Positions 21,476 through 26,881 of a DNA stretch of 64,000 bases are shown piece by piece (position 1 is the first letter of the stretch; every line of letters begins with the position of its first letter). Origin of the DNA: Paraphysomonas bandaiensis (taxonomy: Eukaryota > Protista > Chrysophyceae); contig CBFFRP010000406.1 in NCBI GenBank assembly GCA_965644295.1, positions 124,001-188,000 of the forward strand. Reading direction: 5' to 3'. A program made the translations under genes and the position numbers. The notes under the pieces are model-generated. The model was not told where the DNA came from and did no database searches. It was given only the letters and a program-made list of their open reading frames with translations.

Positions 21476-22714
21476 CTAAACTTGAGAATACACTTCCGCA
21501 GGAAGTCCAAGTCGAGACACTAGGGACTTCGGAAGGGCATAAGTAGGGTCTATAAGGGGAAGCACTGGACTCTCGCCATCTGAGTTCCAGTCACCCGCAG
21601 CGAAATAGTCCAGAAGAGAGAGGCCTGATATTCCAAAAAAAGTGTGAAATATATCGACCATGTTGCCTGGGCGGTCTGCGATCCCGCCACCTGATATATC
21701 TTTGCAGGGCAGGCAAAAACTATCGACGCCTTGGCACTGCAGTATAAAGAGTGCCAGCTTCCCACGGTCTATCCACGACATCTATACCAAACATACTGCG
21801 GTGAATACAGAAACCAAAACGACAAATTCATACCCTTCCAATTATAGTCAACGATGATAAGATCCACCAGGAGTAACACACATCAGCTTGTTTTTCTGGA
21901 CGGCCATTTAGCCCACCCGAATCACACTGTCGTTCCGAGAGCCACCACCCCAAGAGATCTGCATCAACCACATGCAACGCACCAGCAATAGAGAGTGCTC
22001 CCACACAGCAGAATATTTGACCTGCATGAGATTCAGCGCCGGGAACGGCGCCAAATCCGCCGTCAAAGTTCTTACACCTGATGTTACTTTATTATACAAT
22101 ACAGTCAAAACATGTACTCGGCGCACCTTTCTATGAACATGACTGCTTTATCCAAGTCGATAATACCCGTGCGTAGCTCACCCAGTATAGCAAGGGAAGA
22201 TAATGCACAATAGGAGAAGCGTGTATCAACTTCTCCCCAGCAATCACCAGTGAAAGACCCATCTGCTTGCTGCAGGGATGCAATATAAGAAGCAATTTTC
22301 GACCGCGTGCTGTCAATTAGATTCAAGCGATCACAAAGAGCCAATATCTGAAGAGCACTAAGAGTATACAATATATGAGGATCGTGGTTCAACGATCCGC
22401 CAAACCTGAGAATTATGTCAGAAGCGAATCATGCAAAAACACTATTCATATTACCCTCCAGACTCCTCATCCTGACACTGCATGACCCAAGAGGAAATGC
22501 TCTCCACATCCATCTCACAGCTCAGATCTTTTCCGAGCAAAGACATAGCAGTTAGACCCCAGTATATGCCACTCATTCTGAAGTGCTGAGAGACGGTATA
22601 CTCAAACGACTCCGTGTCGTCTGATATCGCCTTGATGTAAGCCGCATGCTTATCAAGCAAAAAAGGAGGCAGTGATCCAGCACTACTACCACTCTCGTGT
22701 GTGAAGGAAGACAT
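21476..22714 (-). CDS. RABGGTB: Rab geranylgeranyltransferase beta subunit
   Basis: [73 protein letters not shown]. Confidence 0.92.
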
Positions 22715-22782: not shown

Positions 22783-22966
22783 GTATGTATGTATGTATGT
22801 ATGTATGTATGTATGTATGTATGTATGTATGTATGTATGTATGTATGTATGTATGTATGTATGTATGTATGTATGTATGTATGTATGTATGTATGTATGT
22901 ATGTATGTATGTATGTATGTATGTATGTATGTATGTATGTATGTATGTATGTATGTATGTATGTAT
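22783..22966. repeat. (TATG)n microsatellite, about 46 units
   Basis: Perfect tetranucleotide run between the divergent RABGGTB and NOX starts. Confidence 0.98.
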
Positions 22967-23275
22967 TTTGTAGGATATGTATTTGCATGCGATACGTATT
23001 CCGTATTCCTTTACACAGCAAGATTTTGTAGTGGAATTCTATGAAGATGTCAAACTAGTGTCATATGCGCCAATAAAAATTTATGTCTTAATTCTAATTG
23101 GCTAGTGTAAGATGCTGTCATTTACACAAATCCGTGCAATAATACTGTTGTATTTCAGCTAGCAATGAGACATGCTGCATGTATGTGTATATGCATGTAC
23201 TGTACCTGCTGTGTAGCTAAGTGAGAGATCATACCCAGCTCATCTTGATACTTCTTTCACTTACTAAGGGACAAG

Positions 23276-26200
23276 ATGGAGGCAAGCGATTTCAAGGAAC
23301 GTCATCCAAGTATCGATGATATTGAATTACAAGATGACAATCCTCTATCTCGTCCCCGGGGATCTCGTTCATCTCGCAGTCAAGCTGCCTCTTCTTCCTC
23401 TTATGCGGACACAAAACGAGCGCAGCGGTTAACAAGTTTCAAGAAAGTATCATCTGGAGAACAAGTGAATCAAAAGACATCTCAGGCGGATCGTCCACCA
23501 GTTCCCTCTAAGCCTATGCCTCCCCCACCCCCTACTGCACCTCGTACTGAGGCTACAAAGAAAGATACAAACGACGACTCTGATATATACGCTGGTAAAA
23601 AGAGTTTACAATATGGAATATGGGCTCACTATATGGGATATGGATCGTCGATGCTATGCTTTTGGTTTGGAATAACTGCAATCTCATGGTCAGATGCACG
23701 CTTCTATGGGTGTCGTGTAGATGGCGAATTTATACATAGCGACTATATAGTAAATTCTAGTGGCACATGTGCCGCTACCTATCACTCATCGTATGTATGT
23801 TGTGATCCTGATGATTCCCCGAAAGTTGATGGAAACGCCTCCATTGGTGTTTTGTATCTGCTGTATGGACTAGGCAATGTTCTAATCGAAAATTGTGATT
23901 GGGGATTTGGAATGTGGTTTCCCAATAATTTGCCGTTTTTTGACCTTGGAATATCGCCCCTTGGCATACTACACATGCTAATTGGAGTAGTAGGTCTTGC
24001 AGATTATGCTACCTGCTTAGCTGGCGTAGCACTCATCTCCACTGGTGTTGTCTATACGCTTGCCACTTGTAGGAAGGAGACAGGGGACGGGGGTCGACAA
24101 CAGAGACGCAAGGCGAGGGCTAAGTTGATGTCATCTCCTATGGCTTATGTGCGTTCCTTTCTGCCTGATTTTTCTGACGTCAATCTTAATCCAATTGAAT
24201 TCGTGAGAAGAATATACAATGAAGATAAGTTGTCATCTTACTTTTGGATGTGCATGTTCTGCGCGATGAACTTTATCGTCTTTGTTTACACGCTTTATAC
24301 ATGGAGTGTTGCCGTGGACGACATCAAAGATGATTTATTGAATGGTACTCTAAAAATTGCCTGTGATACAAAGACTTGTTCGCTGAATCGTCAAATTATT
24401 CGGTCGGGTCCTTTTTCTGGCTTTGCTCCCTGGGCAAAGGCTTGTGGTGGGTGCTTGAATCTCAACTGCAGCCTTATCCTTCTGCCTGTGATCCGACTTA
24501 TTATTCGCAAACTTAACAATGCCGGAACATCTTATTCCCGTTTTCAGGGCGGAGGCATATTGACCCGTTTTTTCGCCCATCCAGTTACCCGCTACATCCC
24601 CCTTCAGAAAAACATTGAATTTCATAAAATATGTGCCCTTGCTGTTTTAATATTTGCCAGTGGACACACTATATTCCACTGTCTGAATCTCTCACGAGCG
24701 AGTGAAACAACTCTGGCGAGGTTTAGATGGTTGGGATGGGATGGAACTGATTTTCTGACCGGTGCCATCGTTCTTTTGTCAATGTTCTTCATTTACTCCG
24801 CCGCTCCCGATATTGTTCGCAATGCAAAATTCGAGATATTTTTCACATCCCACCATTTCTTTGTTGTATTCTTTTTTGTGTTATTTCTTCATGGTCCAGT
24901 GTTTGTTTATTGGGCGATTGTCCCAGTTACACTGTATATAATCGAGAGATACTTACAGACCAAGAGAGGAAACCAGCCTTACGTTGTAACCAAAGTGGAG
25001 TGGATTCCTCCAGTGATGGCTATTCAATTCCGCCCAATTATTAAGGTCAGACAACTTAATGATGAGATGTGGGTTATAATGCATACTTTTAGGAACAATT
25101 TCAGTTTAAAGAAGGGCAGTATCTATACCTCAATTGCCCGTATATATCACAGTCTGAATGGCACCCGTTTACGATATCATCTGCCTATGATGACCTAAAT
25201 AATGGGCCGCGGTGAGTGCAGTGTTACTTCTTGCCATTGAAGCTAATTGGTCGATCACATAGAGTGTTTCTTGAGACTGGAGAGGAAGTTAAAGAAGTCC
25301 CCCGCCCGTCCAACTGGCCTGCTGGCGCAAAGTAAGATACAGTATGGAACTTGCATGCATAGTATTGTCTTAGTTGTTTTTTGGTGTCAAGGTGGAACAA
25401 ATACTGTTTAGTTTCCCAAGATTATACGAAAATACCCCATGAGTTTTTAATAGAGAAGTCGGAGACAGGATATCACGACTATATTTCGCTTCATATTAAG
25501 GTAGTTCTCAATATTTAATGAGATACACTATTGATATACATATATCTTGCTGCTCCAGGTTCATGGATTGGATGAACCCAAAGCCAAGTCCTGGACGCGG
25601 AAATTGAAGGAGTATTTTGAATTAATGAACCCCGGTGATACTGCAGATGGTAGAAGCCAAGGAAAATTTCCGTTTTACTTCACTCGACGAGATCCCCGAG
25701 GGGATATTCTGTTGGGACGACAGTACGGACCTGATGGTCAACAGATACTGCGAGTGGATGGCCCCCATTCTGCTCCTGCTGAACATTATACTAACTATGG
25801 TACCATTATGCTCATTGGTAAGTCTTTTACTCGAATTGCTGTCTACGTAATTATCTGTGAAATATAGGTGCAGGGATTGGATTAACACCTTGTGTTTCAA
25901 TATTGTGTGCATTGACGAAGTAAGTCGACTTTTCCCCCCTGTTTTGATGCGATATTTCATTTTATTTTAGATATCGGTGGAAAAAGAATTTTACACCCGA
26001 AATCGTGCACTTTTACTGGATTGTTCGCCACAATGAAATTGACTCCTTTCAGTGGCTTATTCACACACTTGCAGGTTTGTATCTTGACAACGGTAGGGCT
26101 TTCCGTGATAACTTTGAAATTCAGAGATGGAATACAATTTGCTTAAGTTACGCTCAACTGGACAAGTCGAACCACGGTAAATATAGCTACTTCCACATCA

Positions 26201-26881
26201 TATAATTAATTTGCACTTTTTCAGTTATTATTGTGAAATCAATATTTTCGTAACTGCTGCCGGAAAAGATCACCATGTAAGTAACTTCTGATTGTGTTAG
26301 GTATATAATATGTCTCGGTAATTTAAGGAACCTAAACCATTATTTCGGCCAAGTGGTGTCAAGCCGACAATTGCAAATTCTGTGGCCCCGATGTTTACCG
26401 CGGAGCAGCTGTATGGTATGGTCACTGTCCAATTCTGGTGGTGTATTGATGAGTAATTTTAGAGGGGATGCTAAATCCGACTATGAGCAGTAAGGGAATG
26501 GTTGACGCAATGAAGAGCAGTAGTAACCCCCCTAATCGGTGTGAAAGAACTTCATTATAGTGGTTTGTATGAAATGTATTGTTGTTAGGTTTCAAGATAT
26601 CTGGGTTTGGAATGGGCGTCCCAATTGGGATGAAATTTTTAAGGTTTTGGCTGTGTTCAATTCAATTACGTTACAGTTACCGTCGATTTCCAGGATATGA
26701 AAGAGCGACGAGAGCACACAGATATTGGCGTTTGCTTTTGCGGAGCGCCCGTAATTGGAGCGGTATGTGGAGATGTCATCGTGGTTTGTTTGTAATTTTT
26801 GTAAAGGATCTGCGTTCGATGTGTGAAAAGTACTCCACCGCTAATGATGTCTTATTTTCGCTGCACAAGGAGAATTTCTAG
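23276..26881 (+). CDS. NADPH oxidase (Nox/gp91phox-type) with fused N-terminal p22phox-like domain
   Basis: Heme His pairs NIEFHK..SGHTIFH and TSHH..FLHG; FAD motif EWHPFTISSA; NADPH-domain motifs RVDGP, GAGIGLTP, FYWIVR, GRPNWD, FCGAP; C-terminus HKENF. No EF-hands seen. Many short introns after 25045. Confidence 0.92.

Follow-up and report, generated by a model that had tools for sequence, protein, structure and literature searches.

Cytochrome b558 of animals is formed by the small membrane protein p22phox (CYBA) together with one of the NADPH oxidases (NOX) NOX1-4, and several structures of the complex are available (PDB 8GZ3, 7U8G, 8KEI). We have analysed a stretch of 64,000 nucleotides from the chrysophyte Paraphysomonas bandaiensis (GenBank assembly GCA_965644295.1, contig CBFFRP010000406.1, positions 124,001 to 188,000 of the forward strand; hereafter the window), in which one gene very probably encodes a single-chain flavocytochrome b558, namely a p22phox homologue joined via a cytosolic linker of ~45 residues to the N-terminus of a complete NADPH oxidase devoid of EF-hands. 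The first part of this protein resembles p22phox in its four-transmembrane (four-TM) fold with both ends in the cytosol, in a collinear sequence match over the four helices that is weak when tested directly and significant through a related subgroup, and in its equivalents of Trp9, Gly25, Glu53, His94, Tyr121, Arg127 and Glu129. As in animals, the partner is an EF-hand-free NOX, and its closest solved relative is NOX2. By contrast with the animal heterodimer, the window protein is one polypeptide with the p22phox-like part at its N-terminus. It also differs by a 50-residue insertion with four cysteines in its first extracellular loop (ECL1), by the sequence YSAA in place of the TXXT motif, by short NOX loops C and E, and by lacking both an equivalent of p22phox Arg90 and the C-terminal proline-rich site that docks p47phox/NOXO1.

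Outside animals, an earlier survey recorded p22phox only from choanoflagellates, considered the Dictyostelium case doubtful, and found no regulatory (Phox-type) subunit in Plantae or Chromista (PMC2121648); the origin of p22phox has been called unknown (PMC3591440). The fungal protein NoxD/Pro41 is an accepted free-standing p22phox homologue (Lacaze et al. 2015, via PMC8928025). As described, NoxD/Pro41 and Dictyostelium CybA are divergent non-animal relatives of p22phox that serve EF-hand-free oxidases (NoxA/B), and it is as separate small proteins that they are set apart from the window protein. The NoxD/preNOX proteins of red algae and stramenopiles likewise have no EF-hands and carry four additional TM helices, which are not reported to be p22phox-like. 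According to PMC3591440 and PMC1940245 (the latter for Herve 2006), these helices lie within the dehydrogenase domain, between its flavin adenine dinucleotide (FAD) and NADPH sub-regions. We rejected an equivalence with them because the extra helices of the window protein stand ahead of the haem domain. DUOX enzymes also need a membrane maturation partner, but this partner, DUOXA, is a separate protein unrelated to p22phox, and DUOX itself carries EF-hands as well as a peroxidase-like domain. No account of a fusion between p22phox and NOX was retrieved in full-text literature searches of incomplete coverage; a few of these proteins may already figure in automated Pfam architectures (cf. a faint PF05038 flag).

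The p22phox-like domain and NOX are fused in one gene, one frame and one mRNA (Table 1). The spliced product is represented by two stored database proteins, P0001 and P0020. The second of these, an open reading frame (ORF) of 982 residues from an MMETSP transcript, is identical to the window product residue for residue according to exact-match mapping, as would suit a protist from marine culture. P0001, a JGI gene model 100% identical to the window ORF, lacks the last exons and has a wrong end, whereas P0020, the second member of the P0001 cluster, yields the canonical NOX C-terminus. The 13 introns, all GT..AG and 44-60 nt long (window 25046-26806), have a weak acceptor context in some cases. 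An orthologue in another genome assembly (P0012) is one intronless ORF. Exon 1 lies inside an ORF at 23276-25198 on the forward strand, the translation of which contains the three peptides that an earlier, sequence-only reading of this DNA had likened to p22phox. That reading had proposed a domain at 23597-24079 (residues 108-268); the location was right, and the domain defined by profiles is slightly larger (23594-24115). It had further placed these peptides and the NOX TM core in a single exon, which proved to be the case (23276-25045), and had taken them to form one protein rather than two. In agreement with this, P0020 spans the p22phox-like domain and the whole NOX and matches the window as 14 exons.

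The relationship of the N-terminal domain with p22phox was uncovered by family profiles. A word-indexed search with residues 100-275 recovered 19 proteins (alignment A1), with 47-67% identity over the domain except for one at 30%, and all but one fragment carry the Pfam domain Ferric_reduct. When the profile of a domain alignment of 17 sequences (A2) was run against PDB (177,635 distinct sequences), only three matched at E <= 10, all of them p22phox chains (8KEI_A, 7U8G_B, 8GZ3_A; E 0.37-1). The HMMER alignment followed three collinear segments, the same that had been aligned by eye in the sequence-only reading and were thus reproduced independently, which takes the resemblance beyond chance. 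Among the weaker matches of A2 in a search of 1.84 billion proteins (described below) we found a subgroup of short-loop proteins (P0120, P0131, P0137, P0125 and others), picked for alignment A3 solely by their similarity to A2. They have the same order, p22phox-like domain then NOX, in many cases with an SH3 domain at the very N-terminus. Unlike the window protein, they have no cysteine-rich ECL1 insertion, and they possess, in most cases, an equivalent of p22phox Arg90 as well as a TM2 end of p22phox type (LEY/FEY). The domains of the two groups match each other (A2 against A3 in hhalign, 99.9%, E 9e-34), and the A3 profile, run on the whole genome, retrieved the window domain at E 2.3e-23. 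Against PDB, a single alignment (E 2.2e-11) paired positions 8-127 of the A3 profile with residues 2-128 of p22phox and took in all four helices, and the next match was at E 1.9. With A5, a merged profile headed by the window sequence, p22phox was the sole PDB match, at E 3e-9. The p22phox family of Pfam, PF05038, recognizes three of the ten A3 members (best E 1.7e-7). P0125 and P0140 score 27.4-27.5 bits, above the curated cut-off of 25, and contain Ferric_reduct in the same proteins; P0137 (933 aa) scores 24.9 bits and has all three NOX domains. An A3 protein search meant to gather free-standing p22phox sequences yielded two family fragments only.

The aligned residues include those that matter in p22phox, where Glu53, Arg90, His94 and Tyr121 form a polar centre that is a site of chronic granulomatous disease (CGD) mutations (PMC9568551). 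Glu205, His233 and Tyr260 of the window protein align with Glu53, His94 and Tyr121, so that this core appears to be retained, Arg90 excepted. The equivalents of Glu53, His94 and the Y.LA..R.E end claimed by the sequence-only reading were recovered, the last as Tyr260, Arg266 and Glu268; that reading was silent on Arg90, for which there is none. In addition, Trp116 corresponds to Trp9 in the HMMER alignments, and Gly132, equivalent to Gly25, is invariant, as is Glu268. Arg266 is nearly invariant in the long-loop group and variable in the short-loop group. A nearly invariant E-N closes TM2 in A2, and TM4 is followed there by an R-x-E-x-GDGGR motif that does not vary. The loop that follows the first TM has exactly the four cysteines noticed earlier (C146, C165, C175 and C176), each at least 90% conserved among the relatives, and the insertion that bears them is absent from both p22phox and the short-loop subgroup. 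With its even number of TM helices, the domain has both ends in the cytosol and the first TM of NOX still starts from there.

Structure models are in line with these alignments. An AlphaFold2 (AF2) model based on A2 shows four long helices in a bundle and a small beta-structured ECL1 (predicted local distance difference test, pLDDT, 81; predicted template modelling score, pTM, 0.71). When this model was compared with PDB using Foldseek, three p22phox chains came on top (prob 1.00, 0.99 and 0.95; target-normalised TM score 0.58-0.60), followed by TARP and claudin chains with prob <=0.2. Using VIA-align against 48,161 representative chains, p22phox occupied ranks 1-2 (Z 11.4 and 11.1, root-mean-square deviation ~3 Å), with 116 of 134 residues aligned at 21-22% identity, as compared with 2-10% for other bundles. 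The sequence-only reading had named a profile or structural match to p22phox beforehand as its test; such matches exist for A3, A5 and both structural searches, and the profile match is weak for the protein's own subfamily. The profiles and models together support the N-terminal domain being a genuine p22phox homologue and, with it, the view of the protein as a probable alpha-beta fusion oxidase advanced in that reading.

Table 1. Position of the oxidase gene and its features in the window (residue numbers refer to the 982-residue product).
Feature	Position	Strand	Description	Evidence
Whole NOX gene	23276..26878	+	14 exons, 982-aa product	Exact-match blocks of transcript ORF P0020 (residues 1-982), tblastn
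Exon 1, residues 1-590	23276..25045	+	Single open frame for tail, p22phox-like domain, linker and six-TM haem domain	
Pro-rich stretch, residues 73-90	23492..23545	+	In cytosolic N-terminal tail; SH3-ligand-like PPVPSK (class II) and KPMPPPP (class I)	Motif scan; sequence poorly conserved, lead only
p22phox-like four-TM domain, residues 107-280	23594..24115	+	Probable p22phox homologue	A2 profile against own genome, E 2e-85; A3 profile, E 2.3e-23; PDB profiles; AF2, Foldseek and VIA-align
Extracellular insertion TM1-TM2 (ECL1)	23687..23836	+	~50 residues, with C146, C165, C175, C176	Alignments; beta-hairpins in AF2 models
Glu205	23888..23890	+	Aligned with p22phox Glu53, a polar residue of the core mutated in CGD	HMMER alignments; nearly invariant family-wide
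His233	23972..23974	+	p22phox His94	HMMER; kept in most long-loop members; Tyr, Leu or Gln in short-loop group
Tyr260	24053..24055	+	p22phox Tyr121	HMMER; kept in most long-loop members
R-x-E-x-GDGGR at TM4 end	24071..24097	+	Arg266 = Arg127, Glu268 = Glu129	GDGGR invariant in long-loop group
Linker to NOX TM1	24098..24235	+	Cytosolic, with conserved pre-TM1 helix (NPxxFxRRIYNEDKLSSY)	Alignment; AF2 pLDDT 55-72, short helices
NOX six-TM haem domain	24236..24970	+		Pfam Ferric_reduct, E 1e-11; best PDB match NOX2, E 1e-36
Exons 2-14, dehydrogenase domain	25093..26878	+	FAD-binding HPFTISSA; NADPH-binding GAGIGLTP, FCGAP; C-terminal FSLHKENF	Pfam FAD_binding_8, NAD_binding_6; exon map

The same association was found well beyond this species. 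An exhaustive HMMER search with A2 against 1.84 billion representative proteins gave 101 proteins at E <= 0.001. Of the family proteins, 82 have the end of the domain intact and 100 or more residues after it, and in 78 of these the NOX TM region follows; the other four have low-complexity, garbled tails and look like read-through gene models. No convincing free-standing copy of the domain occurred among these relatives. In the genome of P. bandaiensis, profile searches with A2 and A3 detected the domain as a single copy, at the NOX locus, and no free-standing p22phox gene. Judging from these sequences, more than 80 proteins form a family in which the fusion is conserved.

The full-length product P0020 contains the Pfam domains Ferric_reduct, FAD_binding_8 and NAD_binding_6, and the catalytic part is closer to NOX2 than to NOX5 and DUOX1 among solved structures. 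No EF-hand family was found in it by Pfam at E <= 0.01, as the sequence-only reading had stated, which sets it apart from the Ca2+-regulated NOX5/RBOH/DUOX type. The haem-binding histidines (450/464 and 526/539) are spaced as in NOX2. Four positions, His101, His119, Thr178 and Gly179 in NOX2 numbering, separate NOX that produce reactive oxygen species from ferric reductases (FRE) (PMC3591440). Their counterparts here, at NOX2 spacing, are His450, His468, Thr495 and Gly496, and among the relatives in A1 the signature His468 and Thr495-Gly496 are nearly invariant, as read from sequence and residue spacing. With each of the haem histidines in place, together with the NOX signature (His119, Thr178-Gly179), the enzyme would be expected to reduce O2 to superoxide. 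One may consider instead that the catalytic part is a ferric or metal reductase and that the p22phox-like module serves a metalloreductase, since at least six other NAD_binding_6 loci exist in the same genome, and stramenopiles have many FRE paralogues. We regard this as unlikely, given that all four discriminating positions read as NOX, that NOX2 is the best PDB match, and that the product ends in the NOX-type ...HKENF, with an aromatic last residue.

Two further observations concern catalytic domains of this type. After the HPFTISSA motif, the FAD-binding domain has an insertion of ~60 residues (window 25213-25561, residues ~631-690, LETGEEV...WNKYC...) that is conserved family-wide, absent from NOX2 and soluble-looking by its sequence. 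The further NAD_binding_6 loci (NOX/FRE-type) lie on six contigs of the assembly (G000: C358, C338, C260, C176, C425 and C668; L005-L009 and L011). Two of them sit in open frames of ~2000 aa, and none of them bears a p22phox-like domain.

The two modules were also modelled together by AF2 (residues 100-600, 32 sequences; pLDDT 83, pTM 0.79). A defined packing of the p22phox-like part on the NOX core is suggested by this model, because the pLDDT of that part rises from ~80 alone to >90 beside NOX. Confidence in the model is lowest in the linker (pLDDT 55-72), the sequence of which is basic (RQQRRKARAK) immediately after the invariant GDGGR. These features could be taken to indicate a real homologue of p22phox that ends up in a two-subunit heterodimer as in animals, either by cleavage of the linker after translation or by use of an internal start. 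Nevertheless, the linker would be cytosolic, away from the dibasic proteases of the secretory pathway, and both of its flanks, GDGGR on one side and the pre-TM1 helix on the other, show the high conservation expected of a structural connection. Moreover, 78 of 82 relatives retain the fusion, and in the transcript one ORF covers both parts. We therefore find such a heterodimer quite improbable. A NOX-only isoform might be made from an internal start and would count against a strictly single-chain enzyme.

Several results speak against p22phox homology or against a p22phox-like role of the domain. PF05038 matches neither the window protein nor the domain alone in hmmscan (E <= 10), and a six-frame search of the whole genome with it misses the locus, its sole match being a chance one with stops (E 4.9). 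Even among the close relatives, only two of 17 reach E 0.045. Searching PDB with the single domain by phmmer gave nothing relevant. The direct match of the family profile to p22phox (E 0.37) is not significant alone, and the link depends on the intermediate short-loop subgroup. At the level of residues, p22phox Arg90, before TM3, aligns with Leu229, a position where most short-loop relatives have Arg. The TXXT motif of NOX TM4, a contact with p22phox in NOX1-4, reads YSAA, and no PxxP or proline-rich docking region occurs after TM4, where GDGGR, the basic linker and NOX TM1 follow each other. In the structural comparison, the Z of 11.4 barely exceeds that of soluble copper-storage four-helix bundles (<=10.8); for a helical bundle this score alone is not decisive, although it is consistent with the sequence evidence alongside which it stands. 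The ESM Atlas provided no usable match by features and, by shape, generic bacterial four-TM proteins only.

From the weak direct profile match, the silence of Pfam on the window protein, the ESM Atlas result and the near equality of soluble bundles in VIA-align, it could be argued that the N-terminal part is a generic hydrophobic four-TM bundle which resembles p22phox by convergence and has some other role, for instance in targeting or oligomerisation. However, p22phox is the sole PDB match of A2 and A5 at the limits used and is far ahead of any other for A3, two of these three results being significant. The short-loop subgroup is tied to both the window domain and p22phox, and P0125 and P0140 pass the curated Pfam threshold. 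The structural alignment has an identity with p22phox that other bundles do not approach, functional core residues are conserved, and the domain precedes NOX in nearly all relatives. Convergence thus seems highly improbable to us and is already largely refuted. As for a gene-model or assembly artefact merging two neighbouring genes, which the fragmentary models with garbled ends of many database relatives might suggest, it has virtually no chance of being true and is already refuted by the single exon without a stop that holds the domain and the NOX TM core, the exact match to a transcript assembled from independent data, and the intronless orthologue in another genome, in addition to the same domain order in dozens of independent assemblies.

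If the gene encodes a single-chain flavocytochrome b558, the p22phox-like module would sit in the membrane packed onto the haem domain of NOX, in the manner of p22phox on NOX2. It would act as a built-in stabilising or maturation partner, and no separate alpha subunit would be needed. The four-cysteine insertion of ECL1, together with the cysteine pair of loop A (C363 and C368, invariant in the family), may build an extracellular cap over the outer haem. This idea comes from the shortness of NOX loops C and E in the window protein, since NOX2 caps the haem with its own loops. In animals, the tail of p22phox is proline-rich and is bound by SH3 domains located on another protein, the organiser. 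Here, regulation might instead proceed via the variable cytosolic N-terminal tail, which is proline-rich in the window protein and bears other modules in its relatives. One SH3 domain lies N-terminal to the p22phox-like domain in P0116, P0120, P0126, P0130 and P0131, and one on an exon upstream of P0137 (L002:78-215). Two SH3 domains in P0071 and WW domains in P0044 are likewise ahead of the p22phox-like domain. Such tails are reminiscent of the docking between a proline-rich region and SH3 domains in the phagocyte oxidase. One or more SH3-ligand-like motifs are present in 51 of the 82 relatives whose tail is 50 residues or longer, a count for which no chance expectation was computed.

On its upstream side, the oxidase gene is separated by an intergenic region of ~560 bp from a divergent multi-exon gene for a prenyltransferase beta subunit (window 21476-22714, reverse strand; Pfam Prenyltrans in three ORF pieces), which is transcribed away from it. 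This region contains a (GTAT)x50 microsatellite (window 22783-22982).

A p22phox homologue in stramenopile-type protists would move the origin of this subunit far outside opisthokonts and amoebae and would make p22phox older and more widespread than the literature cited above reports. The SH3, tandem-SH3 and WW modules of the relatives suggest that proline-motif docking around p22phox may be old as well. It is tempting, although rather doubtful at present, to go further and propose that p22phox is an ancient NOX module, possibly existing at first as the front part of an oxidase made in one chain, and not an invention of the lineage of animals, fungi and amoebozoans. Gene fission would then have given rise to the alpha subunit that NOX1-4 and NoxA/B have as a separate protein, and the SH3 domains, WW domains and proline-rich tails would represent relics or parallels of organiser docking, as seen between the proline-rich region of p22phox and the SH3 domains of p47phox. 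Scenarios of fusion versus fission become testable by phylogeny. The single-chain protein would also offer a natural one-gene cytochrome b558 for expression, structure determination and complementation of p22phox-null cells, for which co-expression and stoichiometry are otherwise a nuisance.

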